A DNA stretch of 64,000 bases, from NCBI RefSeq assembly GCF_006345805.1, contig NC_043001.1, positions 30,008,001 through 30,072,000 of the forward strand, in the 5' to 3' direction. Made by a program: the position numbers and the translations under genes. Below are positions 1-62,128 of this stretch, piece after piece; within the stretch, counting starts at the first letter, position 1; every line of letters begins with the position of its first letter. Under the pieces are notes generated by a model, which was given only the letters and a program-made list of their open reading frames with translations, was not told the origin of the DNA and made no database searches. This DNA comes from Octopus sinensis (lineage: Eukaryota).

Positions 1-839
1 TTAATTTCCTCAAAAGTGAAGCATAATAGGCTCCTGCAATTGTGGTACCCTTTGCCAGGAAATCTGTCATCACTACTCCGTCCTGGTCCCAGAAGACTGT
101 GAGCATGACCTTGCCTTCTTTGGAGGGGGTGAGTCATGGTGCTTCCACTGCATTGACTGGGCTTTGGTCTCTGGATCATCATGATGGACCCAGGTTTCAT
201 CCTGTGTAATCAGTCTTTTGAAAAATTTTGACTCATCTTCTTGGCACATCTCCAAATTCACCCCGAGCACTCGACGCGTTCTTGCTTCTGGAAAGGTATG
301 AGCAACCTGGGAATCCATCTGGCAGACACCTTTTGCATATGCAAATGGTCATGAATGATAGTTTCCACAGACCCGGTACTAATCTTAACCTCATGGGCTA
401 TTTGGCGAATAATTATGCGTCGATCTTCCAAAATGGCAGCCTCAACTTGACGAACAGATGCCTCATCAATGGCAGAAGGGGGCGACCAGATCTGGGAGCT
501 GTTTCCACAGAGTTCCGACCATGTTTGAATTCACGATGCCAGCGTTTTACAAGGTCATATGATGGGGCATCATCACCATAAGTTACTTTCATTTCATCAA
601 AAGTCTCCCGTGGTGTGCGTCCTTTCAAATACAAAAACCGGATCACTGCTCGACACTCAACAGGCTCCATTTCACACTTGACTCTGTTCAAACACCTGTA
701 AATCAGAAACCACAATTAATTCAGAGCTGTAATTTGCCACTTACTCTATAGAGATATAAATGATTGCACATGCAAAATTTCAGCTAGATCAAACAACTGC
801 AAGTGGGTCAGAGGCATTACTTATTGAACGTCCCTCGTA
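1..839 (-). mobile_element. mariner DNA transposon with frameshifted transposase; 3' part is outside the window
   Basis: Minus strand begins TACGAGGG (839). ATG at 670: MEPVECRAVIRFLYLKG...RSGRP, then WIPRLL, LITQDETWVHH.DPETK.QSMQW and VMLTVFWD in shifting frames. Confidence 0.92.
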
Positions 840-4502: not shown

Positions 4503-5714
4503 GTATGTCTGGTATTTAACTCCTTTAAAAATTATTCCTTGTTATTTATATGCTATCATTGACTGGAAATAGCTAAAAAGATAAAGCAAGCATGTCTTTA
4601 AGAATTTCATTCCGCAATCATATGGTTCCTGTTTTGGTCCCATTGCCGGACACTTCAGACAAGTGCCTTTTACCATAGAGTATAAACATTGATGAGAAAA
4701 CAACAAAAAAAAAACTGCTCTTCAAACGATGTCTTTTGTGACATTTGTTTCACGTTGTGTTGAAGATACTCCTAGTGTCATTCTCACCATCAAAACTGCA
4801 GTAAATCAGTGATTGGTCTATTGGTTTATGTCAACCAATTACTTTATAAAATAAACACTATCTTATAGATTGTAAGCTATAGTCCACTGAAAGCTGTGTC
4901 CCTGAGTAGGATACTGTATTCTACACATGCCTTTGCTTGAAAGTATCTGTGAAGAATGGGTACCAGTTCTTCTGAGAACAGTTACTTCTCTTAGATTAGC
5001 ATCCTTTTAGTAGTGGAGCAATTATGTTCTACACTTACATGCTCATCTTTTAATTGACAATAACAACTCCTCCACCACCTCCCCAAAACAGGACATCATC
5101 ATCATCATCGTTTAACGTCCGCTTTCCATGCTAGCATGGGTTGGACGATTTGAATGTGAGCTGGCGAACCAGATGGCTGCACCAGGCTCCAGTCTTGATC
5201 TGGCAGAGTTTCTACAGCTGGATGCCCTTCCTAATGCCAACCACTCCGAGAGTGTAGTGGGTGCTTTTACGTGCCACCAGTACGAGGGCCAGTCAGGCGG
5301 TACTGACAACGACCTCGCTCGAATTTTTTACACATGCCAATGGCACAGGTGCCAGTAAGGCGATGCTGGTAATGATAGTAAAGCGATGGGCATTCTAGAA
5401 ATAGTGTAACTAAAGGTGCATTATACAATTCACTGCCAATATTTTGTGTAAACACCTTACTAAATTCAATTAGTCTTTCTTTCTTAAATAACTACTTTTT
5501 TCTGGATGTGTTACCAGCATTAAACTTGTATTCTAGTAATTATTCCTCAGCCACTATAGAAGCTACAGCTCTTGGAGGTATTACTATTACACTAAATTTG
5601 AAAAGAAGCTGTAGGTTGGCAGAATAGAATGGTGGACTAAATGTTTTTTTGAGTTTTTACTTATAACCATTAATACTCTAAGTTAAAATCCAGTCAGCAT
5701 TTACCTTTCATTCA

Positions 5715-7999: not shown

Positions 8000-8545
8000 C
8001 ATCATTATCATCGTTTAACGTCCGCTTTCCATGCTAGCATGGGTTGGACGATTGACTGAGGGCTGGCAAACCAGATGGCTGCACCAGGTTTCAATCTTGA
8101 TCTGGCAGAGTTTCTACAGCTGGATGCCCTCCCTAACGCCAACCACTCCAAGAGTGTAGTGAGTGCTTTTACGTGCCACCGACACGGGGCCAGTCAGGCA
8201 ACGACCTCGCTCGAATCTTTTACACATGCCACCGGCACAGGTGCCACTAAGGCGATGCTGGTAACGATCACGCTCAGATGGTGTCTTTTATGTGCCACTG
8301 GCATGGACCCCAGATAGCCGCTCTGGCAATGATCATGCTCAGATGGTGCTCTTAATACCCTACTAGCACGGGGCTCGAGTGCCAGTAAGGCAATGCTGGT
8401 AACGATCACGCTCAAATGGTGCCTTTTAAGTGCCACTGGTACAGAAGCTGGTTAGCCGCTCTGTCAATGATCACACTCATATGGTGCTCTCTACACCCTG
8501 CTAGCACAGATGCCAGTCATCGATTTCGATTTCACTTGCCTCAGC
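8000..8545 (-). mobile_element. 5'-truncated RTE-clade LINE 3' UTR with (GAT)n tail
   Basis: catcatcatcgtttaacgtccgctttccatgctagcatggg... recurs about 30 times (e.g. 2307, 5094, 17218, 18555, 26605+, 27385+, 28670+, 35612, 38797, 46442, 50144, 53812, 57800+, 58294, 61583). Linked to the RTE ORF2 end by the copy at 20295. Confidence 0.85.
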
Positions 8546-17097: not shown

Positions 17098-18324
17098 GTA
17101 AGTTCTACATTACCATTTTGTTTTGTTATTATTTTTTCTCTGCCATAATCATTAATTTTATTTTCACCTATTGTCATTGTTAAGCAACCACAGTTGTTTT
17201 TAATGCAGCAGTTAGGTTCATCATCATCATCATCACCATCATCATCGTTTAACGTCCGTTTTCCATGCTAGCATCGGTTGGATGGTTCAACCGGGGTCTG
17301 GGAAGCCAGGAGCCTGCACCAGGCTCCAGTCTGATCTGGCAGTGTTTCTACAGCTGGATGCCCTTCCTAACGCCAACCACTTCATGAGTGTAGTGGGTGC
17401 TTTTTACGTGCCACCGGCACAGGTGCCAGTGGGGGCTGGCAACGGCCACGATCAGTTGGAGCTTTTTACATGTCACCGGCATGGAAGCCAGTCGAGGCGG
17501 CGCTGGCAACGGCCACGTTCGGATGGTGCTTTTTACATGCCACCAGCCCTGGTATCACAACTACAATTTCCATTAATTTTTTGATCGGTTTCGATTACCT
17601 CAACAGGTCCTCGCAAGCAGAGGTCAACCTTACTATTTCATAGTTCTTCCTACTTAGTCCACCGCTTCTGTGAATTAACATCTACTATCAACCATGGCAT
17701 TTCTTTACCAAACATGCATTATCCAGAGTTGAAAACTCCACTCAGTCTTTAAAAACCTTAAGCTAAAACTCTGACACTTCCTACAAATGACTGAACCTCT
17801 TAATTCTGGTGATCAGCAGTGATAACCAATGTCTACCAAAGCTATGGCTGTATAACAATAAACAGGCTTTTTTTTTCAGAACCAAAAAGTAGCTCTGCCT
17901 TGAATATAGTTTGAGTTTATACTAGGTACAAGTATTTCCCCTCTGTTAGGAAAACTGCTTGCACTTTTAGAGTGATGTAATCCTAGACTTGATCCCTAAA
18001 AAACTGCCCAGCCAGCTAAGTAAGTCTTTACTCACCAATGCAGTTAAACAAATTTCCCAAGCCAAGCTGTATTTCCTCCGCCTCACCCTGTTGTTGTTGT
18101 TGCTGCTGCTACAGCTACTACTACTACAACTAATTATAATAATCCTTTCTACTGAAGGTACAAGGCCTAAAATTTTGGGGAGGGGACCCCAGTGTTTCAC
18201 TGGTACTTATTTTATTAATCCTGAAAGGATGAAAGGCAAAGTCAACCTCGGCAAAATTTGAACTCTGAACATAAGGACAGACAAAATGCCAGTAAGCATT
18301 TGCCTAGCATGCTAACAATCCTGA

Positions 18325-18415: not shown

Positions 18416-19635
18416 TCTCTTAGGGACAGGAAAGATTATCAGGAGGGTTTTAAGCACATGAAAGACTATTGAAAGATTGCAGATACCTAAAGTATTCAAA
18501 AACTTTCAGTGGTCACATAAATTCTATCAGAAATAAAAACAAACCTAAGTGAGATCATCATCATCATCATCATCGTTTAACGTCCGCTTTCCATGCTAGC
18601 ATGGGTTGGATGAATGACTGAGGGCTGGCAAACCAGATGGCTGCACCAGGCTTCAATTTTGATCTGGCAGAGTTTCTACAGCTGGATGCCCTTCCTAATG
18701 CCAACCACTCCAAGAGTGTAATGGTTGCTTTTACGTGCCACCAGCGCGGAGCCAGTCAGGCAGTACTGGCAACGACCTCGCTCGAATCTTTTACACATGC
18801 CACCGGCACAGGTGCCAGTAAGGTGATGCTGGTAACGATCACGCTCGAATGGTGTCTTTTACGTTCCACTAGCATGGAGGCCAGATAGCCGCTCTGGCAA
18901 CGATCACATTCGGATGGTGCTCTTAATACCCTACTAACACGGGGCTCAAGTGCCAGTAAGGCAATGCTGGTAACGATCACGCTCGAATGATGCCTTTTAA
19001 GTGTCACTGGCACTGAAGCTGGTTAGCCACTCTGTCAATGATCACACTCATATGGTGCTCTTTGCACCCTGCTAGCATGGACGCCAGTCATCGAATTTGA
19101 TTTTGATTTCACTTGCCTCTGATTTTGATTTCGATAATAATAATGATGATGATGATGATGATGATAATATTATGGTCCCTACTATTCTAAGCTTGCAAGC
19201 TGACTATAAACCATCTCAATCTAAATCACCTCACCGCAACTTCTAAAGGAAGAAGGTTTTGGAAAAGCTCTGTGATATGGGATCTATCTCACAGTAAAAA
19301 TTTTTTCAAAAACCTTCCAGTTTTAGAATTGGACTCTCCTTCTGACAACTCTAGAAATTCACACTGAACATTATCCTTTCATGTCGTCATCTCTTGATCG
19401 AGTATGTCTTGGAAAGGTCTACAGATGCAAACCCTACTTTTCCTACCTCCTTATTCTGTTGACAAGATATTTCAAAAATCAACCTTTGATAAAAGAAAGA
19501 AAATAAATACTGCTAAGTGACTGAAATAGTGCAACCTATTAGAAATAGCAGCAAAATTCTTCCTCAAGTCAAATCCAATTGTCTTAAAAAAGAGATGGGA
19601 TACATTGAATGATATGTTTCTAGGTATACTATGTC

Positions 19636-22939: not shown

Positions 22940-25483
22940 AGTTAGTTAGTTAGTTAGTTAATTTGGCTCAAAAGCAAATAGCAAGGCCATGTAGGGGGAC
23001 ATGGAGTTAAGTACAGGGTGGTGTTCATGTAAAGAGTTCAGGCCACTTGAGGTCCAGGGAGGCTTTGAACAAAGCGGTCGTCGGCATCTTCACCATCTCG
23101 TCTGGCAGCTTGTTCCACGGATCCGCAACCCGGACGGAGAAAGCTCCTCTCCTTCGATTGAGATGAAATCGTCGCAGGTAGAGCTTTTCGGAATGACCCC
23201 ACAGCCGACGCTCTAGAGCAGGAGTGAAGAACAGCTCTTTCGAGAGGTTACACTTCCCGCTTATGATGTTGTGGGCGAGAATGAGATCACCACGGCGGCG
23301 GCGTTTTTCAAGAGAATAAAGGTCGAGCGTCCTCAGCCTTTCTTCGTAGGACAAATTTTTGAGACCATGAACCATGCGGGTAGCCAGCCTCTGGACTCTT
23401 TCGAGGTGCTGTATGTCTTTGAGGAGATAAGGAGAAGAGGCTTGAATCCCATACTCCAATATGGGTCTCACCAGCATGACATAGAGTGGCAGGAATATGG
23501 CTGCTGTGAGCATTCCGAATGACCGTCGAATCAAAAACAGAATTCCGCGCGCTTTGTTGGCAGCATGGACGCACTGGGCCGAAGGCGAAAAGGAGGAATC
23601 CACCAAGATACCCAGGTCCTTTACCTGATCGGTCCTCTCCAGCAGCAGACGACCCGGCTCGAAATCAAGTTGAGTTGCAGGAGTAGAGCCGACAGGCAGA
23701 TGACAGCACTTTGACACGTTCAGACACAGGTCCCAATCGTTAGACCACTTCCAAATTTGGTGGAGGCATCGACGAAGATCCTCTATACTACCGCGAGGAG
23801 CGACCAGTTTGATATCGTCGGCAAATAGAAGGGTGTGTTGCGTGAGGTCGTCGGGCAAGTCATTTATGAAGACTAAGAACAACAAGGGCCCAAGCACTGA
23901 ACCTTGAGGCACGCCACTGCTCGCACTGGAGACGTCGGACCGCGAACCATTAACTTGAACTTGGAAGGAGCGATCTGAGAGGAAGGCACCAACCCATCGT
24001 ACAATATCCGGATGGAAACTATATGCTTGAAGCTTGACAAGTAGTAGGCGGTGGTTTACCGAGTCAAAAGCTTTGGCAAAGTCCAATAAAACGATGTCAA
24101 CAGCATCACTATCATCGAGGATGCGCGTCACCAATTCTTCCATTACTAGTAAGTTGGTCAAGCATGATCTCTTCGGCACAAAGCCGTGTTGGGAATCAGT
24201 GATCGAGGCTGTGTTTAGGAGGTGGAGCATCATACTTTTCTTAAGGATGGTTTCGAACATCTTGCTGATTATTGATGTAAGGGAAACCGGTCGGTAGTTA
24301 AGCGGGTCTTCGCGGCTCCCTTTCTTGAAAATTGGGCAGATTATCGCTGTTCTCCAGTCTGCAGGTATAACACCCGTCGCCAATGACATATTGAATAGTC
24401 GTGTTAAGGGCTCGCAGATGACCGGAGCCAACGCTTTGATAACCCGTGGGTGTATGCCGTCAGGGCTGTGACCCTTGTTGACATCGAGGCCTTGAATAAC
24501 ACGTTTGACTTCGTCCCGCGTGATGATCAATCGAAGCATTGGAGGTACCGATCTATCAAATGGAGGGGGTTCACGACCATCATCTTGTTTGAAAATAGTT
24601 GAAAAAGCCTCGGCAAATAATTGACTCTGTTGGTAAGGGTCCTCAATCGATACGCCTGTTGAGTCTACCAACGTTGCAATCTGGTTGTTCAAGCGGGAAT
24701 TCCGCTGGACATGGGCAAAGAAGGTTTTTGGATTGCTACTGGCATTTGCCGCGATTTTTTATTCATAACTGAAGCGTTCTTTCTTTTCAATTTTCACGGC
24801 TCGGTCTCGTTGAGTTTTGTACACCTCAAAAGCTGCAGTCGAATCCAGATTTTTGAATTCAGCCCAAGCAATATCTCTGAGTCGACGTTCTCGTTTAACC
24901 TTCTTCGTCACCCAGGGCTTGTGTTTCTTCCTCTTGGGAAGCCCAACGGGAACTGCCTGGTCAGTCAAACAGATTACATATGCTTTGAGGGATGACCATA
25001 GTTCGTCAACTGAGGACAACGTCATCAGGGAACGCCAGTCCAGAAGCGCGGAAGCCTCGGTTAGAATTTCAAGATTAATTGCAGAGAAGACTCTACGTAG
25101 CAGCGAAGTAATCGTGGGCGTGGAAAAAGTTGTGTGCATGACGAACTTCAGGACCACATGATCACTCTTGGCAAGAGGGGCGCACACAGATACGTCTGAC
25201 ACTGATCTTGGATAGCGGGAGAATACCAGATCTAGCATAGATGGCTGCTGCCCAGACCGATGCCTTGTCGGATATTCAACATGTTGCGATAGAAAACAAT
25301 CTTCAGCCACGTCAAGAAGGGCCTGGCCGAACCGGGAAGATGTTGTACAAATTGATGCGGGCCAATCGATCGTGGGAGCGTTGAAGTCGCCTAGTACCAA
25401 GCAGTCATGCGAAGCTGAAACGAATCTTATCGCTTCGAGTAGATGAGCATCGTCCTGGGGGTCGGCTAGGTCGGCTAGAGGCG
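22940..25483 (-). mobile_element. young 5'-truncated CR1-clade LINE inserted in a family D SINE
   Basis: APE C-terminal half (GDFN, LDLVFS, SDH) and RT (QHGF, LLDFAKAFDSV, GVPQGSVLGP, FADD) lie in one frame; CR1-type end RRGAFSVRVADPWNKLP; (AACT)n tail; GTCTT duplicated at 22935..22939 and 25484..25488. Confidence 0.93.
23025..25400 (-). pseudogene. LINE ORF2 (endonuclease + reverse transcriptase) with a single premature TAA at 24761..24759
   Basis: ORFs 24759..25400 and 23025..24692 share a frame; read-through gives YE*KIAANASSNPKTFFAHVQRNSRLNNQ. Confidence 0.92.
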
Positions 25484-26145
25484 GTCTTGCTCAAGAACAC
25501 AACACACTGCCCAGTTCAGGAATTGAACTCACTACCTCTAATCACTGAGCCATGTGCCTTCAAAAAAGTACTTAGGGACTAGTATTTTCATAACTATTTT
25601 ATCATTTCTGTTATTGTAATATTTTGTACTGGAAATTATTGTAGTGTTCTGAAATTTATTTAAATTTTTAAGGTAAAATAACACCTCTACATTTGGAATA
25701 AGTTGTCAATCTATTGCAAGCTGAGTAGAAAGGAAATTACTAAGTGGATAAAGTGTTTGCCTTGGCTTTCCTTGAAGCCTCAATTCTTTATAGAATCATG
25801 GAAGTATCATCATGGTATACAGCATGATGAGAATTCACCCCTCCCTCCAGGTTTAATCACAACAGATTTTTTCCAGAGGTAAAAAAAAAAAAAGTGAGAT
25901 GAAACAACCTCTATACTGAACTGATACTTAATTGATAATAAAAAGATAAACAATTGATTTAGGTGGGATTTGAAGTACAAAGAGCCAGAGCAAATACTGT
26001 ATGGTATTTTTGATGCTCTAATGACTCTGCCACTTTATCACCTTAAGGTATTTGATTCTATACTCATGGTTCATTAGTTCAAATCTTATAATAGCATTTT
26101 GTCAGTCACTTTCACCACCACAACCAGTATAACCACTACAATACC

Positions 26146-33361: not shown

Positions 33362-33974
33362 GCCACAAGGTTATCCATAGAAGACCAGCAGTCACCCATG
33401 CATAGCAGCCTCTCCTTTCCATGCCATCACTGTTATCCAAGGGGAAGGCAAAAGCCAATACAGCTTGGCACCATTGACATCGCAACTCATATCTACAGCT
33501 GAATGAACTGGATCAACATGAAATAAAGTGTCATGCTCAAGAGCACAACACACAGCCCTGTCTGGGAATCGAACTCACTACCTCATGATTGTGCGCCTGA
33601 TGCTCTAACCACTGAGTCATGTGCCTTTACACAACTGTGTGGGTAGAGTTAATATGTTATTCATTTTAAGGTGGAGAGCTGGCAGAATCGTTATCATGCT
33701 GGGCAATATGCTTAGCAGCATTTTATCTGTCATTACATTCATCATTGTCATTTAACATCCATGCTAGCATGGATTGGACTGTTTAACAAGGGCTGGTAAG
33801 CTGAAGGGCAGCACCAGGTTCCAATCTGATTTGGCATGGTTTCTGCATGCAACCTACATGGGTACCAGTTGCATGACACCAGTATCTGCCACAACTACGA
33901 TTTCACTTGGCTTGATGGGTCTTCTTCTAAAGCATGGCATATTGCCAAAGGTCTCGGTTATTTGTCATTACCAC

Positions 33975-35585
33975 TGTGAGGCCCAACACTCAAAAGGTGC
34001 TTTTCACATGCCCCCAGCTCAGAAGCCAGTTATGCAAAACTAGCATCAGCCATATTGCCTCCATGAGGCCCAACACTCAAAAGGTGCTTTTCACATGCCA
34101 CCAGCTCAGAAGCCAGTTATGCAAAACTAGCATCAGCCATATTGCCTCCATGAGGCCCAACACTCAAAAGGTGCTTTTCACATGCCCCCAGCTCAGAAGC
34201 CAGTTATGCAACACCAGCATCAGCCATATTGCCTCCATGAGGCCCAACACCCAAAAGGTGCTTTTCACATGCCACCAGCTCAGAAGCCAGTTATGCAACA
34301 CCAGCATCAGCCATATTGCCTCCATGAGGCCCAACACTCAAAAGGTGCTTTTCACATGCCACCAGCTCAGAAGCCAGTTATGCAACACCAGCATCAGCCA
34401 TATTACCTCCATGAGGCCCAATGCTCGAAAGGTGCTTTTCACATGCCACCAGCTCAGAAGCCAGTTATGCAACACCAGCATCAGCCATATTGCCTCCATG
34501 AGGCCCAACACTCAAAAGGTGCTTTTCACATGCCACCAGCTCAGAAGCCAGTTATGCAACACCAGCATCAGCCATATTGCCTCCATGAGGCCCAACACTC
34601 AAAAGGTGCTTTTCACATGCCACCAGCTCAGAAGCCAGTATGCAACACCAGCATCAGCCATATTACCTCCATGAGGCCAATGCTCGAAAGGTGCTTTTCA
34701 CATGCCACCCAGCCTCAGCCATATTGCCTCCATGAGGCCCAACACTCAAAAGGTGCTTTTCACATGCCACCAGCTCAGAAGCCAGTTATGCAACACCAGC
34801 ATCAGCCATATTGCCTCCATGAGGCCCAACACTCAAAAGGTGCTTTTCACATGCCACCAGCTCAGAAGCCAGTTATGCAACACCACCATTAGCCATATTG
34901 CCTCCATGAGGCCCAACACTCAAAAGGTGCTTTTCACATGCCACCAGCTCAGAAGCCAGTTATGCAACACCACCATTAGCCATATTGCCTCCATGAGGCC
35001 CAACACTCAAAAGGTGCTTTTCACATGCCCCCAGCTCAGAAGCCAGTTATGCAACACCACCATTAGCCATATTGCCTCCATGAGGCCCAACACTCAAATG
35101 GTGCTTTTCACATGCCCCCAGCTCAGAGGCCAGTTATGCAACACCAGCATCAGCCATATTGCCTCCATGAGGCCCAACACTCAAAAGGTGCTTTTCACAT
35201 GCCCCCAGCTCAGAGGCCAGTTATGCAACACCAGCATCAGCCATATTGCCTCCATGAGGCCCAACACTCAAAAGGTGCTTTTCACATGCCCCCAGCTCAG
35301 AAGCCAGTTATGCAACACCAGCATCCGCCATATTGCCTCCATGAGGCCCAACACTCAAAAGGTGCCTATCACATGCCCCCAGCTCTGAAGCCAGTTATGC
35401 AACACCATATCGGCCATATTGCCTCCATGAGGCCCAACACTCAAAAGGTGCTTTTCACATGCCCCCAGCTCAGAAGCCAGTTATGCAACACCAGCATCGG
35501 CCATATTGCCTCCATGAGGCCCAACACTCAAAAGGTGCTTTTCACATGCCACCGGCACAGGTACCAATTGCATGACACCAGCATT
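33975..35585. repeat. 87-bp tandem array (19 unit starts) built from RTE-element sequence
   Basis: Unit catgaggcccaacactcaaaaggtgcttttcacatgccaccagctcagaagccagttatgcaacaccagcatcagccatattgcctc; one 86-nt and one ~62-nt unit cause the frame switches in the ORF track. Confidence 0.95.
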
Positions 35586-36620
35586 GGCCATGACTACAAT
35601 TTCACTTGGCTTCATCATCATCGTTTAACATCCGTTTTCCATGCTAGCATGGGTTGGACGATTCGACCAGGGTTTGGGAAGCCAGGAGGCTGCACCAGAC
35701 TCCAGTCTGATCTGGTAGTGTTTCTACAGCTGGATGCCCATCCTAATGCCAACCACTCCGTGAGTGTAGTGGGTGCTTTTCACATGCCACCGGCACAGGT
35801 GCCAGGCAAGGCAGCGCTGGCAACAGCCACGATCGGTTGGTGCTTTTTATGTGCCACTGGCATGGAAGCCAGTCAGGGCAGTGCTGGCATCGGCCATGTT
35901 CGGATGATGCTTTTTATGTGCCACCGGCACAGGTATCACAACTGCAATTTCCATTTGATTTTTTGATGTTGATGTACTTGACTCAATAGGTCTCTGAGTT
36001 CAAATTCCACTGTGGTCAACTTTGCCTTTCAGGGTCAGTAAAATAAGTACCAGTTGAACTCTGGGGTTGATGTAATCATCTTATCCCTCCCATAAAGTTG
36101 CTGGCCTTGTACCAAAATTTTAAATCAATATATGTTATTCATTTCAAATTTCTGATGGTTAGTGATTGTGAGGAAAACATAGATAAAGAGTAAATTTCGG
36201 ACGATAAAAAACTAGGGAGAGTGTTTGATGTGCTAATGGGGTGAGAGAAGGGTTATGATGAGTGGGTGTAGGTGAAGATGTTATGCAAGTGGCATTACCT
36301 GAAGAGCTGAAGCCATTGTGTGACAGTTGCAGAAACATTATGAGGGGATACTGATAAGTTATGTGCAAAAGTTTTCCTCTGAAGTCAGTAGCCTTGACTG
36401 TGTTTGTATATGAGGCAATATTTCCCTGAGGGAAATATTGCTTCATAAACACTTGATTTGATGAAGAAATACTAGACATATAAAATTATTACTTTGAAAT
36501 ATTATTATTTATATAAATAGAAATTAATTTTTTGTATGAAAGTATTGTAGTTCACTTGAAGCATTGTAATATCGAAGAAGGTAAAAAGAGAGAAAATAGC
36601 AAGCTTTTTACATGCGGAAG

Positions 36621-36777
36621 GTTTTATAAAACCTTTATATTTCAGGCTCAAAGGCCCATCTTCAGAAAACATATAAATGTTTTATAAAACTTTCTGCATT
36701 GTCAGGAGCATTCTATTTTCTTTCATTTTCTTCTGAAGATGGGCCTTTACACCTGAAATATAAAGGTTTTATAAAAC
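36621..36777. repeat. 47-bp inverted repeat pair, each arm a minimal hammerhead-like motif
   Basis: 36621..36667 vs 36731..36777 (44/47). Arm reads CTGAAGA-T-GGGC cttt(ga/ac) (G/A)CCT-GAAATATA. Confidence 0.6.
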
Positions 36778-42577: not shown

Positions 42578-42810
42578 ATCAACGAATTTATGGCAGTTAT
42601 GTTTACTGAAGAAGCCCATCAACAGAATACAAGTTGTGGAAAGATTTTATTGTGCATTTTCAAACAAGAAGTGTCAGGTTACATCATTGAGCATGCAGCA
42701 GAATTAATTCCTTTAATAATGGCTAAATCTGACAGCAATTCTCAAATTGTTGGTCATATATTGATATCAGTACTTGATATCTTGAAGCACAAAAGTTTTA
42801 GATGGAAACA
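42578..42810 (+). CDS. PRKDC: DNA-PKcs exon 20 (0-2)
   Basis: gcacag|ATC...CA|gtaagt; INEFMAVMFTEEAHQQNTSCGKILLCIFKQEVSGYIIEHAAELIPLIMAKSDSNSQIVGHILISVLDILKHKSFRWK. Confidence 0.88.
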
Positions 42811-43030
42811 GTAAGTTTCACAGTAACTTCTAATTATACATCGTTAAGAAAAAGAATAGGAAAAGATCAATTCAACCCATTCCATCTAATCTAAACATTA
42901 TATCAACTAATGCAATATAATATCTAAGAAAATGCTTTTGGACAAAAACTCTAGGGTGACTTAAAAAAAGATCATTTTATTAAAATATGTTTATCACTTA
43001 AAAACCATCACAGTTTGATTTATCATCTAA

Positions 43031-44378: not shown

Positions 44379-44511
44379 TGCTTCACAAGTTTGTGACATT
44401 ATTTTAAAAAATTTGAATATGATTGAAAATTGGTGGAGAGATGACGCATCAGAAGATACACAGAGAATCACTTTTGATATCTTACTTGGAATCCTTCGTC
44501 TAGACTCAAAG
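44379..44511 (+). CDS. PRKDC: DNA-PKcs exon 21 (2-0)
   Basis: taacag|T...AAG|gtaagc; ASQVCDIILKNLNMIENWWRDDASEDTQRITFDILLGILRLDSK. Confidence 0.92.
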
Positions 44512-45974
44512 GTAAGCTCACACAGTTGTTGTTTCAGAATCTGTTGAAGCTATGTTGGGTTTAAATCTTAAAAAGAAAAATCTTGTGTAGATAGGAGGGT
44601 GGGTTGTGAATAGAGAAACAAAAGCAACTTCTGCAGATTAACACTTTTAAGAAAACCATTCATTTTGTACAAAGCTAATATTGTAATAGCTGCTTGAACT
44701 ATTTAATATTCTATTCCGTGGCTGATTCACAAATACTTTCATTTTGATTTGTAGAAAATGAAATTTTGCTAAAATAAAATTGATTGTCAAGCCTGTTTTA
44801 ACCCTTTAACGTTCAAATTTCTCTGTCAAATATAATGCTTATTTATTCCCATTGATATAAATTAGTAATACATTGCCTTGTAGCTTTGAGGTTTCAGTGA
44901 CATGATTATCTATTTTCAGAATAATATTGAAAGGTAAGTGTGAGAGTCTGATCAATTTGAAGATAAAACAGATTTATTTTAGCTGGACATGACCAGTTTA
45001 AAATGCTAAAGGGTTAATGTGAGAAATAAGCATATAACTGAAAAATATGTTTCTCTTTTACTTACACAGTTATGTTAACAAGCCTGAACATACATATCAG
45101 TTCTGTGTATTCTGGATTGCAACAGCAGAATATACTTACCTTACTTAGCTTCACCGTACAATATAACATTCTATTTGTCATTAACAGACAGGCAGGGTTT
45201 ACTCGCTCTGTGTATAGATCAAACAAAATCTAAGTGCAAAAGCATGACCTGAGTTGCCTACACTCTCGGTCTACCATTAGTGCTGCATCATTTGCATAAA
45301 GAAACTCCCAGAAGTTTCTCTTCAAAAATTTTCGTAATTTTTTTTTAACTCTTTAGCATTTAAATATCTGGACAAAATATTCTACCTGTTTTAGTTTCAA
45401 AATAGCTAAATCCGGCCTCTCCTACACTTACTATATACAATGTCATTCTAAATATAAATAACAAGCAACCCCACCCCACCCTGTCCAATGGATGGTGCTG
45501 AGTTGTCAAACATTTAAACCAAATTTTCTCAAAACAACTAGGCCTCCCCTTTGAGAAACACTGATTTAACCTAAATTTGAGACACCAGCAAAAGAAGGAA
45601 TAAAAATAGACTTTTTTCTATTCCAAAGAATGCTTTATCGATCGCATTCCCACCTGGAATCGATTTTTGCAATATTTTCGAGACTTATACACGCCCTGAT
45701 ACCGTCGCTATCTACATATTCAAATTTGAGCGCAATCAGATGGAGGATGCCCGAGATCCTAGAAGACACACACACACACAGACAGAATGGATTTTATATA
45801 ATAGATAATATCATTGAAATCCAGGAGCTGTAACATAATGCATGATTAATTCAAAACAGTATGAATAAATAGGCATTGCTTTCTCAGAGTAACACGAATG
45901 TTAAAAAGGGTTGATATTAAATTACTTAAATGCATCTTTTTCAGGAGTATAATCTTCCTTTTTAATTTTTTCAG

Positions 45975-46067
45975 GTTCTTTCCGATGGTCAAAATCCTAC
46001 TTGTGAGTTGCTGCACAAGTTCTTTTATATACTTTTGTCGAAAAAAACTGTAGCATCTTCCTTCAAG
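45975..46067 (+). CDS. PRKDC: DNA-PKcs exon 22 (0-0)
   Basis: tttcag|GTT...AAG|gtaag; VLSDGQNPTCELLHKFFYILLSKKTVASSFK. Confidence 0.85.
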
Positions 46068-46924
46068 GTAAGAATTTAAAATAAATAAAACATGCATTAT
46101 TAAATAATCTTATTAATTATGTATATATCTATGTGTGTCTTTGTGTTTGTATCTGTTCCCCACCCCAACTGCTTGACAACCAGTTTTGGTGTGTTTACAT
46201 GCCCATAACTTGACGGTTTAGCAAAAGAAACTTATAAAATAAGTACCAGGCTTTAAAGAGAAGTAAGTCCTGGGATACTATGTTTATCTAAAACTCATCA
46301 AGGCAGTACCCCAGAATAGCCACAGTCATATGACTGAAAACTCGGGTAAGTTCCAGCCTCGTGAATGTGCAAACCAAACACATTTTTAGGTAGGGAATTC
46401 TATCAACTTTACATACAACCATGGAGATTTATGTCCTTGTACATCATCATCATCATTTAACGTCCGTTTTCCATGCTAGCATGGGCTGGACGGTTCAACT
46501 GGGGTCTGGGAAGCCAGAAGGCTGCACCAGGCTCCACTCTGATCTGGCAGTGTTTGTACGGCTGGATGCCCTTCCTAACGCCAACCACTCCGTGAGTGTA
46601 GTGGGTGCTTTTTACGTGCCACCTGCACAGGTGCCAGACGAGGCTGCCAAACGGCCACGATCGGATGGTGCTTTTTACGTGCCACCAGCACAGAGGCCAG
46701 TCACGGTGGCACTGGCAACGGCCACATTTGGAAGGTTCTCTTACGTGCCATCGGCACTGGTATCACAGTAGGAAATCATTTTTTTAGCCAAGCTCCTCCT
46801 GGATCAGTTATTACTGATGTGTTCACTAGTTATGATTCTAGTTCTACAGAATTCCATACATTAAATAATTTAGGTAATTGTTTAGTTTAGTTATATAAAA
46901 AAGTAAATAAAAATTACGCGGGAG

Positions 46925-47278
46925 ATAAGTAGTGAAAGAAGCAAAGGGACATTGGGTATTCGTTGGCATAGAGAGATTCTCAAGAAAGTGTTTTTTGATT
47001 GAAGTACCTGACCACACAGAAGAAACTTTAACTAAACTGATACAAAGGTGGATTTTACCTGGGTCTCACATAGTCAGCAATGGATGGCAAGCATATATAA
47101 TAACATCAGTATCCTCAATGGTGGTGCCTACATGCATGAGGTAATTATACATCAACAACATTTTGTTGATCCACATGATTCAGATGTCCACACACAAAAT
47201 GTGAAAAATATGTGGATGTAGGTAAAACAGAAGTTGAGACGACAATTTGGGACATTGGACAAATTGTTTGTTTCATAT
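46925..47278 (+). pseudogene. Merlin / ISXO2 (IS1595-like) DDE transposase relic
   Basis: WVFVGIERFSRKCFLIEV..TLTKLIQRWILPGSHIVSNGWQAY, frameshift, then HQQHFVDPH..VHTQNVKNMW. Confidence 0.78.
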
Positions 47279-47673
47279 AGGCGCAGGAGTGGCTGTGTGG
47301 TAAGTAGCTTGCTTACCAACCACATGGTTCTGGGTTCAGTCCCACTGCATAGCAACTTGGGCAAGTGTCTTCTATTATAGCCTTGGGCCAACCAAAGCCT
47401 TGTGAGTGGATTTGGTAGACGGAAACTGAAAGAAGCCTGTCGTATATATGTATATATATGTGTATGTGTGTGTATATGTTGTGTATCTGTGTTTTATACC
47501 CACATCACTTGACAACAGATGCTGGTGTGTTTAGGTCCCCGTAACTTAGCAGTTTGGCAAAAGAGACCGAAAGAATAAGTCCTGGGGTCGATTTGATTTG
47601 ACTAAATGTGGTGCTCCAGCATGGCTGCAGTCAAATGACTGAAACAAGTAAAAGGGTAAAGATTATCTGCATG

Positions 47674-47909
47674 TCGGCAAGCTGGCAGAAACGTTAGCAC
47701 ACTGGGCGAAATGTGTAGCCGTATTTCGTCTGCCGTTACGTTCTGAGTTCAAATTCTGCCGAGGTCGACTTTGCCTTTCATCCTTTCGAGATCGATTAAA
47801 TAAGTACCAGTTACGCACTGGGGTCGATATAATCGACTTAATCCGTTTGTCTGTCCTTGTTTGTCCCCTCCCCCTCTGTGTTTAGCCCCTTGTGGGTAGT
47901 AAAGAAATA
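47674..47909 (+). mobile_element. SINE family B, 19-bp TSD
   Basis: GGTAAAGATTATCTGCATG at 47655..47673 and 47910..47928. Confidence 0.93.
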
Positions 47910-48156
47910 GGTAAAGATTATCTGCATGAGTTTCTCTGATGTAATTCCACTGAGAAAAAGAAGACATTTGTTCACTTTCTGGCAGCAATCGCCAGTCTTA
48001 ACGACTGTATAAAAAGTAAGCTGTTTCTTTTTCTACTTATCTCTCCTTAATTTTATTTACTTTTATTTACTGAACAATTACCAATAATTTATATATATAT
48101 CGCCATGATAAATCGTTAGCCACTACACACATTTCTTCTCTCCTTGTTTTTTCTGT

Positions 48157-48198
48157 GTCCCTTTCTGTAGAAGAGCGTAGGCTCGAAACGTAAAAGAC
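48157..48198 (+). ncRNA. degenerate minimal type I hammerhead-like motif (A6U)
   Basis: gtcccttt-CTGTAGA-A-GAGC gtag GCTC-GAAAC-GTA-aaagac; lies in a pLTR-like segment (~48075..48300) bounded by (TA)n. Confidence 0.5.
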
Positions 48199-48328
48199 TT
48201 TTTTCTGTTCCTGAGCATTATACTAATACATCTGTTTGTTTTGTACACCACCTGTCTTCGTCTTTTGTTTTTTTCGTAAACTCTCCCTATATATATATAT
48301 ACTTTATTTTAAGCAGCAGAAAATTCAA

Positions 48329-48378
48329 CAAAATCTGTTACTCTGAGTTTCTCGTTGCCGTTCATCAGACAGTTTTTG
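48329..48378 (-). ncRNA. type I hammerhead-like motif, antisense arm of the palindrome
   Basis: CAAAAACTGT-CTGATGA-A CG gcaa CG A-GAAAC-TCAGA-GTA-ACAGATTTTG; stem I 9/10 bp. Confidence 0.6.
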
Positions 48379-48808
48379 CTAGAATGGAACTTATATATCA
48401 ATTCAATCTATACTCTTACAAACGCTACACCTTTAAAAAGAAATGGACTTGTTTGATTGGCCCTTTAGAAAAAACGGTCAATCTTCGAGCGATAAACAAA
48501 AAGGTCAAAAATATATGTATATATATATAAAAAAACTTATAAAAATTATAAAATCCGAGGAAAAAACCGAGGGAAAAAACCTATTGCCGTTAATGAAGAC
48601 AGGCAATAGGTTTTTTCCCTCGGTTTTTTCCTCGGATTTTATAATTTTTATAAGTTTTTTTATATATATACATATATTTTTGACCTTTTTGTTTATCGCT
48701 CGAAGATTGACCGTTTTTTCTAAAGGGCCAATCAAACAAGTCCATTTCTTTTTAAGGTGTAGCGTTTGTAAGAGTATAGATTGAATTGATATATAAGTTC
48801 CATTCTAG

Positions 48809-48858
48809 CAAAAACTGTCTGATGAACGGCAACAAGAAACTCAGAGTAACAGATTTTG
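48809..48858 (+). ncRNA. type I hammerhead-like motif, sense arm (stem II weakened)
   Basis: Same motif but stem II reads A CG gcaa CA A; predicted cut after A48848. Confidence 0.55.
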
Positions 48859-48953
48859 TTGAATTTTCTGCTGCTTAAAATAAAGCATATTACTCTACCA
48901 CTGGTATTTGAGTACTCTTTTTTCCACCTTGTTTCACATTTATGTGTTTACTC

Positions 48954-48992
<39 letters not shown>

Positions 48993-49002
48993 CTTTTACT
49001 AG

Positions 49003-49067
49003 GTCTCTCTCTTGGATCTGCTTCCTTTCCTGTCTGTTTCACCTGAGCCACACAACTCTCGACTAAG
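49003..49067 (+). CDS. PRKDC: DNA-PKcs exon 23 (0-2)
   Basis: tactag|GTC...AG|gtatag; VSLLDLLPFLSVSPEPHNSRL(R); supplies the needed phase. Confidence 0.82.
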
Positions 49068-50589
49068 GTATAGTTCTCTTTTTTTATCATCAATACTAAC
49101 CTCACATTGTTATATGCTTTTCTTTGTTTGAAACCATATAGACTTTCCACTGGTGATAGTCGTGGCAAAATGCAAGACACACGAAGAAACAATATTTTTT
49201 TAGTGCCTCTTTTGACAGCAATAAACACATGCACTGGTTCTATTTCACTTCATTTATTTTTATTTAGTCATCTAAATCGGCAAGTTGGCTGAATCGTTAG
49301 TACATCGGACACAATGCACAGCAGAATTTCTTTCAACACTTAATCTTCTGAGATCAAATCCTACTGGGTTTGACTGTGTCTTTCAACATCTCAAAGTTGA
49401 TAAAATATCACTTGAGCACTGGAGTTGATGTAATTTACTTAACCCCTCCCACTAAAATTGTTGACCATGTGCTAAAATTTGAAACCATTATTATTAGTCA
49501 ACAGTGGAGGCGCAATGGCCCAGTGGTTAGGGCAGCAGACTCGTGGTCAGAGGATCGCGGTTTCAATTCCCAGACCAGGCGTTGTGTGTGTTTATTGAGC
49601 GAAAACATCTAAAGCTCCATGAGGCTCCGGCAGGGGGTGGTGGCGACCCTTGTTGTACTCTTTCACCCCAACTTTCTCTCACTCTTTCTTCCTGTTTCTT
49701 GAGTAACGCTGCGATGGACTGGCGCCCCGTCCAGCTGGGGGGAACACATACGCCATAGAAACCGGGAAACCAGGCCCATGAGCCTGGCTAGGCTTGAAAA
49801 GGGCACATAAATAAAAAACAAATAAAATTATTAGTCAACTAGTTTACCATTTCACCAATTAACTAATCAATTGTTTGATTAGCAGTTTTGATCAGATGTA
49901 AACATTAGAAATCACAGTCTCAAAATTTATGGTTTCTATAATCTTTTATTCCTATAAATAATTTATAGCATCGCCATCGTTACCAGCATCGCCCTACTGG
50001 CAATTGTGCTGGTGGCCCAAGAAAAAATTTGAACAAAAACAAAGCAAAAAAAAAAACCAAATATAATTAACTTCATAGTTGCTTTTTACTACTCAAATTA
50101 GGTGGAATGTTGTATACATATATAAAAAATAGATAAATGCAAGATCATCATCATCGTCATCGTTTAACGTTTGCTTTCCATGCTAGCATGGGTTGGACGA
50201 TTTGACTGAGGACTGGCGAGCCAGGTGGCTGCACCAGGCTCCAATCTTGATCTAGCAGAGTTTCTACAGCTGGATGCCCTTCCTAACGCTAACCACTCTG
50301 GCATGAGGGCCAGTCAGGCGGTACTGGCAACGGCCACACCCAAATGGTGTTTTTTTTTGTTTTTTTTTATATGCCACCTACACACTGGCACAAGTGCCAG
50401 TAAGGCAATGTATATAAAAATATGTTTATGTATTTGTTTTGCCAGATTCCTGATGTGGAATCATATGTTGAAACATATATTGTTATATTTCAGGATGGTT
50501 TTTTTCCCCCCTCCCCACAAATAAACACAAGCACTAGATTCTTGTTCATCGCTTTTGATTTATTCTTATTCTTACTTAAGTGTCCTTTA

Positions 50590-51399: not shown

Positions 51400-52477
51400 C
51401 AGTGGTTTTCAACTAGGGTTTCGTGGAACCTTAGGGTTCCGCCAGTACAGTCCAGGGGTTCCGCAAGAAGTTACAAAACTGCTAATATCGGCAGTAATTT
51501 TTAATTTTCCTGTGCAGATATGTGTGCATCATCATCATCATCATCATTTAGCGTCCGTTTTCCATGCTAGCATGGGTTGGACGGTTCAACTGGGGTCTGG
51601 GGAGCCCGAAGGCTGCACCAGGCCAGTCAGATCTGGCAGTGTTTCTACAGCTGGATGCCCTTCCTAACGCCAACCACTCCGAGAGTGTAGTGGGTGATTT
51701 TTGTGCCACCGACACAGGTGCCAGACGAGGCTGGCGAACGGCCACGCTCGGATGGTGTTTTTATGTGCCACCGACACAGGTGCAGACGAGGCTGGCAGAC
51801 GGCCACGCTCGGATGGTGTTTTTATGTGCCACGACACAGGTGCCAGATGAGGCTGGCAGGTGCCAGCGAGGCTGGCAGACGGCCACGCTCGGATGGTGTT
51901 TTTATGTGCCACCGACACAGGTGCCAGATGAGGCTGGCGGACGGCCACGATCGGATGGTGTTTGTTACGTCCCCAAAGCACGGAGGCCAGTCTATGCGGT
52001 ACTGGCTACGGCCACTTCGGATGATTTTTTGTGTGCCACCGGCACTGGTACCACAAGATACAAATTCCATTTATGCTATCTTATTTTGATTTGTTTTGAT
52101 TTGATTTGATTTGATTTGATTTTCACTTCCTCAACAGGTCTTCACAAGTGTCACTTGCCTCAACAGGTCTTCAAGTGTCACAAGAAGGAAGGTATGCACA
52201 GGTGGACTGTCTACGTCGCCGGGTCTTCGGATGGTGTCTTTATGTGCCACCGACAGGTGCCAGATGTGGCTGGCGAACGGCCACGATCGGATGGTTTTCT
52301 TGTGTTGCCACCGGTACTGGAACCACAAAGATACAACTTCCATTGATGTCATCTATTTTGATTTGGTTTGATTTGATTTGATTTGCATAAGACTATTAAA
52401 TTATTGCACAGGGGTTCCTTGAGCCAGTGGAATGTTTCCTTGGGGTTCCGCTCCAGCAAAAAGTTTGAAAAGCACTG
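51400..52477. mobile_element. non-autonomous hAT element carrying a nested RTE-derived insertion (51528..52383)
   Basis: TIRs CAGTGGTTTTCAA / TTGAAAAGCACTG; 8-bp TSD CATTAGAT / CATTAGAC. The insert contains ~60-bp tandem units and (GATTT)n. Confidence 0.85.
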
Positions 52478-56290: not shown

Positions 56291-58768
56291 GTAAGTTCCT
56301 TTTATTAATATTTAAAAGTTAAACGTTTTAACTTTTAACATTTTAACTCCTAGGCGTAGTAGTGGCTGTGTGGTAAGTAACTTGCTTACCAACCACATGG
56401 TTCCGGGTTCAGTCCCACTGCGTGGCACCTTGGGCAAGTGTCTTCTACTATAGCCTCGGACTGACCAAAGTTTTGTGAGTGGATTTGGTAGACGGAAACT
56501 GAAAGAAGCCCATCGTATAGATGTATGTATATATATATATGTGTGTGTGTGTGTGTATATGTTTGTGTGTCTGTGTTTGTCCCCCCAACATCGCTTGACA
56601 ACCAATGCTGGTGTGTTTTTGTCCCCCGTAACTTAGTGGTTCGGCAAAAGAGACCGATAGAATAAGTACTAGGCTTACAAAGAATAAGTCCTGGGGTCAA
56701 TTTGCTCGACTAAAGGTGGTGCTCCAGCACGGCCACAGTCAAATGACTGAAAGAAATTAAAAGAATATATATATGTGTGTGTGTGTATGTTTGTGTGTCT
56801 GTGTTTGTCCCCACCAGCTGGTGTGTTTACGTCCCCCGTAACTTAGTGGTTCGGCAAAAGAGACCAATAGAATAAGTACTAGGCTTACAAAGAATAAGTC
56901 CTGGGGTCAATTTGCTCGACTAAAGGCGGTGCTCCAGCATGGCCACAGTCGAATGACTGAAACAAGTAAAAGAGATTTTACAGGCATAAGTATGGCTGTG
57001 TGATTAAGAAACTTGCTTTTCAAACACATGGTTTCAGGGTTCAGTTCTACCGTATGGCAAGTGTCTTCTACAATAGCATGGGCCAAATAAAGTAATCCAA
57101 TTTAGCAAATAATTGCTTAATGAGTCAAAAACAAAATTCTTTCATCTTTTACTATATACTGTAACTTCAGATGTTGATGTAGAATAAGATGCTTGCTTTC
57201 CAACCTCATGGCACCTTGGGCAAGAGTCTTCTATAACCCTGAGCTGACCTGGGCCTTGTGAGTAGATTTGTTTGATGGAAACTGAAAGAAGCCCATCAAA
57301 TATGTGGGGGTGGGTTCTTTGTTTGTGTTTTCCCACCACCACCACTTGACAACCAGGCATTTTGTCTGTTTGTTTACATCCCTGTAACGTAATGGTTCAG
57401 CAAAAGAGACTGATAGAATAAGTACCAGGCTTTAACTGCAGTTGATTCATTCGACTGAAACCCTTCAAAGTGGTGCCCCAGCATGAACACAATCCAGTAA
57501 CTGAAACAAGTAAAAGATAAAAGATAAAGGATTCATTTTAGTTTTTAACATTCAGATTATTCTGTGAAAGTTAATACTTATTAATTCCCATTGTTTTGAA
57601 TTAATCAAACATTATCTCGTAACTTTGAGATTTCAATGATGTCATAGTATATTCTTAGAATAATATTGTAAGGCAGATGTAAGAGGCCAGATTTTGACAG
57701 GTTGACTATAGAACAGGTAGAATATTTGGAGCCAGATATGGCCTGTTTAAATACTAAAGGGTTAAAACTGAGTGTCACATCTATATTGGGGTCAGTGTAT
57801 GCCAGCCTCGCCTTGCACCTGTGCCGGTGGCACGTAAAAAGCACCCACTACACTCACGGAGTGGTTGGCGTTAGGAAGGGCATCCAGCTGTAGAAACATT
57901 GCCAGATCAGACTGGGCCTGGTGCAACCTCCTGGCTTCTCAGACCCCGGTCAAACCGTCAACCCATGCTAGCATGGAAAGTGGGCATTAAACGATGATGA
58001 TGATGATATGACCCACTCCTTCCAGTGAGTGATTTTGTACCTTTCTTATAAATTACTATTAAGTCAAATAGAAAGGCAGTGAGCTGGTAGAATCATAAGA
58101 GTATCAGACAAAATGGTATTTCTGACAATTTTTTTTACATTATGAGTCCAAGTTCTGCTGCGGTGGAATTTGCCTTTCATTTTTTCAAGGTCAGTAAAAT
58201 AAAATACCAATCAAGTGTTGGGATCAATAGAACTAATTGGCCCTCTCTTCTCAAACTTGCTGGCATTGTGCACAAAAAGAAGTATTAAATCAAATCATCA
58301 TCATCATCATCATTTAACGTCCGTTTTCCATGCTAGCATGGGTTGGACGGTTCGACCGGAGTCTGCACCAGGCTCCAGTCTGATCTGGCAGTGTTTCTAC
58401 AACTGGATGCCCTTCCTAACGCCAGCCACTTCGTGAGTGTAGTGGGTGCTTTTTACGTGCCAGGGGAGGTTGGCAACGGCCATGATTGGTTGGTGCTTTT
58501 TACATGCCACCGGCACGGAAGCCAGTCATGGTGGCGCTGGCATCAGCCACATACGGATGGTGCTTTTTTAGGTGCCACCGGCACAGGTGCCAGGGCAGGC
58601 TGGCAACGGCCATAGAATTAAAAAAAAAGATAAGGACAATTAGGGTACAGCTGAGTACACAATTTATTGTAGGGTGTACTCCCTCCCCTTACCCCATCTT
58701 CTGCTTCTTAATCCCTTGCCCTCCTTTTTGTTTTTCTCTGTTTCCTTGTAATCAAATTGTGTTACGTT

Positions 58769-61211: not shown

Positions 61212-62128
61212 GGTTTGACTAAGGACCAGCGAGCTAGGAGGCTGCACCAACTCCAATTTGATTAGACAAAGTTCCTACAGCTGGATGCCTTTCCTAATGC
61301 CAACCACTCCAAGAGTGGTGTGGGTGCTTTTACGTACCACCTGCATGGGGGCCAGTCAGGTGGTTCTGGCAACGACCAGGCTCAAAAGGTATTTTTTATG
61401 TGCACCCTGCATGGGAGCCAGTCCAGCGGCACTGGCAACGACCACACTCGAATGTTGCTTTTGTTGTTGTTGTTGATGTGGTGGTGGTGGTGGTGGTGCA
61501 GGAGGAGCAGCAGCAGCAGCAACAACAACCACATGACTAATTCAAGACTTCTTGAATAATTAAACATTTGACAGAATGATGATGATCATCATCGTTTAAC
61601 GTCCGCTTTCCATGCTAGCATGAGTTGGACGATTTTGACTGAGGGCTGGCGAAACAGATGGCTGCACCAGGCTCCAATCTTGATCTGGCAGAGTTTCTAC
61701 AGCTGGATGCCCTTCCTAACACCAACCACTCCGAGAGTGTAGTGGGTGCTTTTTACATGCCACCGGCACGGGGGCCAGTCAGGCGGTACTGGCAACGACC
61801 TCGCTCGAATCTTTTTACACATGCCACCGGCACAGGTGCCAGTAAAGCGATGTTGGTAACGATCACGCTCAGATCTGTATGCTAAAGAGTTGAATAGCTT
61901 GCAATAGTGAGCTCAAATCCTTTTATGGGATACAAGAGTGAAAGGAAGTATTAGGAGTATAGTAATATAATTGATTATCTGAGTCATGCAAAAAAAAATT
62001 GAGTGTTTCACTGATTCTTCTTGAATTTTTGGTATTCAGAAATCAACTATTATGATATACATCTATTGCTTCAAATACTGTTATTTGCTGATATATAATA
62101 TGCTGATAATCATTAATCTATTTTTCAG

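Follow-up and report, generated by a model that had tools for sequence, protein, structure and literature searches.

A young, near-perfect palindrome with hammerhead-like motifs in a DNA-PKcs intron of Octopus sinensis, and its possible origin as a fold-back retroelement insertion

A 64,000-nt stretch of the Octopus sinensis genome (assembly GCF_006345805.1, contig NC_043001.1, positions 30,008,001 to 30,072,000 of the forward strand; hereafter the window, in whose coordinates all positions are given) begins within the gene for DNA-PKcs, which lies on its plus strand. One intron of this gene holds a 584-bp near-perfect inverted repeat, and each of the two arms of this palindrome contains a motif that resembles a hammerhead ribozyme. 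The locus thereby raises the question of what kind of event places such a structure in an intron, whether its motifs are genuine hammerheads, and whether it has any bearing on the gene that carries it. The reading we favor, to which we give about an even chance of being right, is that the palindrome is a recent fold-back insertion of the 3' end of a Penelope-like element (PLE) or of a retrozyme-type relative.

The first-pass annotation of the window, made from the letters alone, had described a palindrome with arms of 287 and 284 bp, a 13-nt loop, and only three differences between the arms. A repeat finder bore out this structure at positions 48302-48885, as did a gapped alignment in which the left half was paired with the reverse-complemented right half; the parts are as follows (all three located by repeat finding and alignment, the center also by RNA folding).

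48302-48588, minus strand (element sense, i.e., the motif-bearing strand): left arm, 287 nt, with its 3' end at 48302
48589-48601: unpaired center, GTTAATGAAGACA, 13 nt, the turn-around point between two 5'-truncated ends
48602-48885, plus strand (element sense, here the same as host-gene sense): right arm, 284 nt, with its 3' end at 48885

The three differences comprise a single substitution, C48353 in the left arm versus A48834 in the right, and two indels, one of 1 nt in a T run and the other of 2 nt (one TA unit) in a (TA) run. Because the arms differ by only ~0.35% plus these two microsatellite-type indels, the palindrome is likely to have formed recently, and the youth that had been claimed for it is supported by arms that are nearly identical. 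When one arm was searched against the 64-kb window with blastn, the other arm was recovered at E=1e-143. Beyond the arms there is one mismatch (A48301/C48886), after which 4 more pairs form in the TA-rich flanks (to 48297/48890). Folded as RNA, the 594-nt palindrome region yields a single hairpin of -469 kcal/mol (z=-51). An AATAAA hexamer occupies positions 48879-48884, just before the right-arm 3' end at 48885.

The hammerhead-like motif occurs once in each arm, directed outward and ~37 nt away from the outer 3' end of the arm.

48326-48381, minus strand: hammerhead-like motif with an intact 2-bp helix II (CG/GCAA/CG); predicted cleavage between 48339 and 48338
48806-48861, plus strand: hammerhead-like motif, gene-sense copy, with CUGAUGA at 48819-48825, GAAA at 48836-48839, and GUA at 48846-48848

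In the right arm the motif lies on the plus strand, and the left arm has its mirror copy on the minus strand; it reads 5'-UAGCAAAAACUGU CUGAUGA A CG GCAA CG A GAAA CU CAG AGU A / ACAGAUUUUGUUG, where the slash marks the predicted cleavage site; in the gene-sense copy A48834 stands in place of a G, leaving helix II there with a single G-C pair. All elements of the type I core (C3 U4 G5 A6 N7 G8 A9, G12 A13 A14, the A15.1-U16.1 pair, and an H17 that is not G) are present and in the correct order in both arms. Helix I, which is open, consists of 4 bp, an A.A mismatch, and 5 bp, i.e., 9 of 10 pairs, and is followed by 3 further pairs. Helix II is minimal, with a C-G and a G-C pair closed by an A.A mismatch and a GCAA cap; this closing mismatch, which the first-pass annotation had already entered as a caveat, is seen in both arms. 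Helix III is likewise minimal, with 3 bp (A-U, C-G, and U-A) and a CAG loop, and the cleavage triplet is GUA.

We assessed how readily such a motif arises by chance with a type I descriptor of our own, which requires at least 2 bp in helix II and which the plus-strand copy therefore fails. The minus-strand motif was the sole match to this descriptor on both strands of the window (128 kb). In 300 dinucleotide shuffles, the number of matches per shuffled window was 0.007 when 8 of 10 stem I pairs were accepted and 0 at the 9 of 10 found here. As shuffled sequence nearly never yields a match of equal quality, chance does not explain the motif, and with good probability it is hammerhead-derived or hammerhead-like. 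Separately, a relaxed minimal-hammerhead descriptor gave a weak match at 36631-36670 on the minus strand (CUGAAGA, a 4-bp helix II, GAAA, and a 5-bp helix I with G-U pairs); matching under the relaxed descriptor only, it is probably a chance occurrence, and we rejected it as a second hammerhead.

The immediate surroundings of the palindrome are rich in TA.

48288-48301: (TA)7 microsatellite, the presumed target tract, directly adjoining the left end of the palindrome
48886-48955: unique 70-nt stretch between the palindrome and the (TA)17.5 array
48956-48990: (TA)17.5 microsatellite, separated by 70 nt from the right end of the palindrome and closely preceding the polypyrimidine tract and acceptor

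Only 12 runs of at least six TA units occur in the 64 kb, so the exact abutment of the palindrome on (TA)7 is unlikely to be due to chance. The 70-nt stretch at 48886-48955 resembles neither the arms nor the left flank and is either original flanking sequence or a one-sided insertion 'tail'.

These features fit the reading introduced above, in which the palindrome would comprise the 3'-terminal ~285 nt of a hammerhead-carrying retroelement in two copies, joined head to head at their 5'-truncated ends. The source would be the pseudo-long terminal repeat (pseudo-LTR) of a PLE, or a non-autonomous, 'retrozyme'-type derivative mobilized by such elements, and the target would be the (TA)n tract in the DNA-PKcs intron, with both element 3' ends facing target DNA. 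Nicked target DNA would prime reverse transcription, the nascent complementary DNA (cDNA) would snap back on itself or switch strand after ~300 nt, producing equal arms and the 13-nt turn, and ligation and replication would then fix the duplex palindrome. Given outward motifs near the outer ends, the antisense (cDNA) strand of each arm runs on without a break from a 3' end of the target, which fits priming from both target strands, or from one strand plus fold-back. The retroelement origin, the snap-back step, and the neutrality of the insertion are what we infer from this arrangement.

Much of the arrangement has been described in PLEs. These elements show strong 5' truncation, partial tandems, and frequently an inverted 5'-truncated copy that makes inverted repeats, and their pseudo-LTR contains hammerheads; the targets are biased toward (TA)n, and a tail may be present on one side (PMC8557442). 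A purified PLE protein nicks and extends both target strands, unlike the proteins of long interspersed nuclear elements (LINEs) (PMC11167929). In Schistosoma, pairs of minimal hammerheads on opposite strands and 100-700 bp apart have been attributed to truncated PLEs (PMC4209133). The inverted PLE-type layout proposed in the first-pass annotation thus finds support in the outward 3' ends, the (TA)7 abutment, and the published PLE arrangement (PMC8557442).

Several results weigh against this reading, and the most direct of them concern the ribozyme itself. A search of the whole window against 4227 Rfam families, including the hammerhead models, returned no hammerhead family at the gathering score, and no hammerhead was returned at E<=10 from the 701-nt region or from ~100-nt slices of either arm. 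The only Rfam matches were to generic long-hairpin microRNA (miRNA) precursor models, at 105 bits versus a gathering score of 211; matches to MIR8562, mir-1277, and FasX were rejected as generic hairpin resemblance far below threshold. The G10.1-C11.1 pair, listed as highly conserved by Cervera and de la Pena (PMC4209133), is absent, with the A.A mismatch in its place in both arms. In addition, the minimum free energy fold of the 69-nt monomer pairs CUGA with UCAG, at -13.0 versus -7.5 kcal/mol for the hammerhead fold. Of the type I hammerhead assigned earlier to each arm, then, the complete core and the three helices stand, while the silence of Rfam, the missing G10.1-C11.1 pair, and the differing monomer fold speak against it. 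The helix lengths also depart from those of the proposed relatives: PLE minimal hammerheads typically have a helix II of 6-8 bp and a helix I of 4-5 bp (PMC4209133), whereas in the palindrome helix II has 2 bp and helix I has 9-12 bp, the opposite of the PLE pattern.

A mismatch at the base of helix II does have a natural precedent in the U.U of ~60,000 HHR_Amex2 motifs in the axolotl (PMC7229834). When two sense copies of the motif were co-folded, the minimum free energy structure was a classical double hammerhead, at -28.2 versus -26.0 kcal/mol for two monomers. In the predicted structure an extended helix III joins the two molecules, with 4+4 bp around an A.A mismatch, stem I forms in trans, and the cores are unpaired. 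Among metazoan type I and PLE hammerheads, dependence on dimers is described as the rule (PMC4209133). Judged from its sequence, the motif is a non-canonical putative ribozyme, and the case for calling it a ribozyme is weaker than the first-pass annotation implied.

The remaining points against the favored reading concern the parent element and the insertion itself. In the window, blastn of one arm gives only (TA)n noise besides the other arm, so that no third arm copy was found. Among 10 open reading frames (ORFs) of the window compared with Pfam, a set that includes the largest but is not a six-frame translation, there was neither a PLE ORF nor a GIY-YIG domain, which upholds for these ORFs the lack of a Penelope ORF stated earlier. 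The sole reverse transcriptase among them is CR1-like, with an APE endonuclease, and lies 23 kb from the palindrome. Searches for relatives covered collections that appear not to include the genome of the source species; within these, no relative of the arms was found by DNA pattern in viral contigs or prokaryotic genomes. The candidates for a target-site duplication (ATA, ATAT, and TACT; 3-4 bp and TA-rich) are insignificant given the ~200 boundary combinations examined. Finally, two independent truncated insertions would not give equal arms, and an extra snap-back step therefore has to be assumed; a turn-back of the cDNA, or fold-back priming at the DNA level, accounts better for the equal arms and 13-nt center than would two truncations that arose separately.

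The same searches gave three further results. For a 113-aa ORF that spans the loop, 5.8 billion proteins yielded no homologue and Pfam no match, and we judged it not to be a gene. The sole metagenome match (L001, 1225-1247) was rejected as a chance 23-nt identity inside a GC-rich bacterial coding region, and the sequence did not occur in the literature searched.

The position of the palindrome within its host gene bears on some of the alternatives. The exons at 42590-42811 and 44383-44511 align to human DNA-PKcs residues ~1554-1661, and those from 56117 onwards align to human residues 1802-1973; the best protein matches of the DNA-PKcs exons are 50-69% identical. The palindrome lies between these two groups of exons, in an intron with the following surroundings.

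44383-44511, plus strand: upstream DNA-PKcs exon, 3' part (..SQVCDIILKNLNMIENWW..LRLDSK), with donor AAG/GTAAGC at 44511/44512
44512-49002, plus strand: intron of ~4.5 kb with the palindrome near its 3' end; it also contains SINE-like (short interspersed nuclear element-like) repeats and a DDE transposase fragment
49003-49067, plus strand: putative 65-nt DNA-PKcs exon (VSLLDLLPFLSVSPEPHNSRL.), with a good acceptor, tttcttttactag/G, and a weak donor, AAG/gtatag

The putative 65-nt exon continues the phase of the exon that ends at 44511 and runs in frame into the next exon at 49142, and the alignment to human DNA-PKcs extends into its first residues; taken alone, its 21 codons give no significant protein match. 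The last base of the palindrome lies 118 nt upstream of 49003 (117 intervening bases), exactly as had been noted. The intron that separates the putative 65-nt exon from the next one is very short (49068-49141, 74 nt).

Two other origins at the DNA level have to be set beside the favored one. The palindrome could be a fold-back or miniature inverted-repeat transposable element (MITE) type of DNA transposon, inserted by a transposase at a TA-rich site, with the motif being a chance resemblance or a captured fragment. A hairpin with a short loop does resemble many invertebrate MITEs, the flanks are TA-rich, and the short direct repeats ATA, ATAT, and TACT can be drawn at the boundaries; the window contains mariner and IS1595-like DDE remnants, including one within the palindrome's own intron, and Rfam sees no ribozyme. 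Nevertheless, no candidate for a target-site duplication is significant among the ~200 boundary combinations, and neither a linked transposase-related sequence nor a second copy is found in the window. A complete core with three helices and a predicted double-hammerhead dimer would be very improbable by chance, and the motif is placed as it is in PLEs and retrozymes, near the 3' end and facing outward, all of which makes a transposon of this type unlikely in our view. The alternative of an inverted duplication of a single pre-existing intronic copy, through fold-back break repair or a template switch beside the (TA)n, would account for equal arms around a short asymmetric center, which is a signature of fold-back priming, for pairing that resumes beyond one mismatch and reaches slightly into the (TA) flank, and for the lack of a clear target-site duplication; moreover, replication forks are known to stall, and DNA to break, at (TA)n tracts. 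It requires two events, an insertion and then a duplication, where one suffices, and the duplicated block stops within ~5 bp of the boundary between element and (TA)n, a boundary that random fold-back is not expected to respect. We regard this as rather improbable as the whole explanation, and it does not contradict a retroelement origin of the arm sequence, with which it is compatible.

The two other explanations concern whether the palindrome is real and whether it is there for a reason. Were it an assembly or read artifact, i.e., a fold-back chimera absent from the genome of the animal, differences of the kind seen in two of the three cases, in homopolymer or dinucleotide length, would be typical consensus errors. 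The palindrome is internal, however, and the unique flanks on both sides continue a coherent intron-exon structure, while fold-back read chimeras usually hit contig ends; the distinct 13-nt center and the genuine base substitution between the arms also argue for a real structure, and an artifact is thus very unlikely. A functional hairpin, in which the 284 bp of intronic double-stranded RNA (dsRNA) supply the host with small RNAs, undergo editing, or modulate the weak 65-nt exon, would be in keeping with the extreme stability of the RNA, with its position 118 nt from the acceptor of an exon with a weak donor, and with miRNA precursor models being the only Rfam matches (105 bits versus the gathering score of 211). 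These matches reflect hairpin shape alone, though, the near-identity of the arms makes the structure too young to have been shaped by selection, and the hairpin includes neither the branch point nor the polypyrimidine tract. We consider such a function highly improbable. Below, the locus is discussed under the favored reading, in which the 3' end of a PLE or of a retrozyme-type relative was recently inserted in fold-back form.

The single substitution between the arms falls within helix II. That it alters stem II of the sense-strand copy had been recognized in the first pass, and we confirmed that it turns a helix II C-G pair into C.A on the plus strand. The change is a transition from CpG to CpA, and CpG transitions are the commonest kind of mutation. 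The window as a whole is depleted of CpG (observed/expected 0.44), has TG and CA in excess, and has a GC content of 38.8%; on these grounds, the CpG depletion with TG/CA excess suggests germline DNA methylation in the source organism. As an ordinary CpG transition in a CpG-depleted window, the substitution needs no selective story, and it points to ordinary decay and a very young age.

At the DNA-PKcs locus the palindrome is probably without function and neutral, and we propose that its hammerhead motifs are passengers there. Self-cleavage of the DNA-PKcs precursor messenger RNA is unlikely because helix II of the gene-sense copy is damaged, the monomer fold is disfavored, the partner motif is antisense, and the 284-bp hairpin is dominant. 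The second motif cannot serve as the partner in a dimer because it is antisense on the same transcript. The concern that the long hairpin would compete with ribozyme folding was well founded, as the hairpin of -469 kcal/mol dominates the prediction for the full element. In general, long dsRNA in an intron may undergo editing or dicing, and long palindromes in DNA may be unstable. The 284-bp intronic hairpin could plausibly be edited or diced and might be a fragile site, and effects on exon inclusion, on ADAR or Dicer processing, or through cruciform breakage would at this point be purely conjectural.

The window contains a number of other repeats. A CR1-like LINE lies at 23028-25490 on the minus strand, with an RVT_1 ORF (577 aa open) preceded by an AP-endonuclease ORF; its best database relatives are only 54% identical and include many CR1 copies from birds or turtles, and an exact look-up of the reverse transcriptase gave no match. 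The window opens with a Mos1/mariner-type transposase remnant that has an HTH_48 domain (76-715, minus strand). Within the intron of the palindrome, a short ORF at 46932-47144 on the plus strand matches the ISXO2/IS1595-like DDE transposase domain and is probably a decayed DNA transposon. A large intronic minisatellite, at ~33770-35990 on the plus strand, is a long tandem array that is open in several frames and encodes repeated peptides, e.g., ISHIASMRPNTQKVLFTCHQLRSQLCNTS. A SINE-like repeat is very abundant on both strands and has the peptide ...LQLDALPNANHS..., with a second family having the peptide ...RRHLPKVPRSGTEPGTMWLVSKLLTTQPLLRL...; examples among the many sites of these repeats are 5116-5355, 8060-8314, 17216-17581, 18622-18885, 46394-46768, 50210-50521, 51552-52106, 58337-58612, and 61643-61882. 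ARAGORN detected no tRNA-like parts in the window.

If the favored reading is true, the palindrome is a further example of Penelope or retrozyme-type elements leaving inverted, hammerhead-tagged fragments in genes. It is unusually clean and young, with near-identical arms, a precise turn-around, and an exact (TA)n junction, and it could help show how inverted structures originate, e.g., by snap-back or by priming on both target strands. The arrangement itself is already known, and the palindrome does not open a long-standing question. As a long shot, one may imagine a 'hairpin retrozyme', in which snap-back cDNA inserts as a perfect palindrome and the transcripts are long dsRNA rather than circles, a route of propagation or persistence that would be undescribed. 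If this were true, such an element, placed beside a weak exon, could link small-RNA or editing pathways to the splicing of a core DNA-repair gene, DNA-PKcs.

The closest known counterparts of the palindrome are the PLE pseudo-LTRs (PMC4209133; Craig et al. 2021, PMC8557442), with which it shares a core near the 3' end, an inverted 5'-truncated layout, and insertion at (TA)n. Its two motifs, on opposite strands and ~480-535 bp apart, fall inside the 100-700 bp reported for such pairs, and its weak, near-palindromic helix III resembles theirs and would imply, on the folding model, activity as a dimer. The palindromic segment here is ACUCAGAGU, palindromic apart from its central base, and in PLE minimal hammerheads it is 15.2-16.2/loop 3. 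In contrast to the single unpaired base 5' of helix II in PLEs, the palindrome motif has an unpaired A after A9 and a second before G12. It also differs in that no ORF for a reverse transcriptase with a GIY-YIG domain was found nearby among the 10 ORFs scanned, and in its equal arm lengths, which the published descriptions do not require.

Metazoan retrozymes (bioRxiv 10.64898/2026.07.22.740005) offer a second comparison, as the ~285-nt unit of the palindrome fits their size, and a low GC content, a type I-like motif, and a weak helix III are shared. A mismatch at the base of helix II, as in the axolotl HHR_Amex2, is another likeness. Retrozymes are thought to derive from PLE pseudo-LTRs and have been reported as depleted from vertebrate introns. 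They form direct tandem arrays of 170-400-bp units, each with a type I hammerhead, whereas the palindrome has two inverted copies in an intron and no tandem array, and its arm does not begin at the predicted cleavage site.

The foldback elements and hairpin MITEs of invertebrates are similar in being nearly all inverted repeat with a short loop, in being small and non-coding, and in having a TA-rich target; the palindrome differs from them in having no significant target-site duplication and no other copy in the window. Foldback and MITE families are not known to carry a ribozyme core. Finally, the known intronic hammerheads resemble the gene-sense copy in placing a hammerhead-type motif on the sense strand of an intron of a protein-coding gene. 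They are single, canonical, and deeply conserved, whereas the repeat described here is young and duplicated, its helix II is non-canonical, and its sense copy is damaged.

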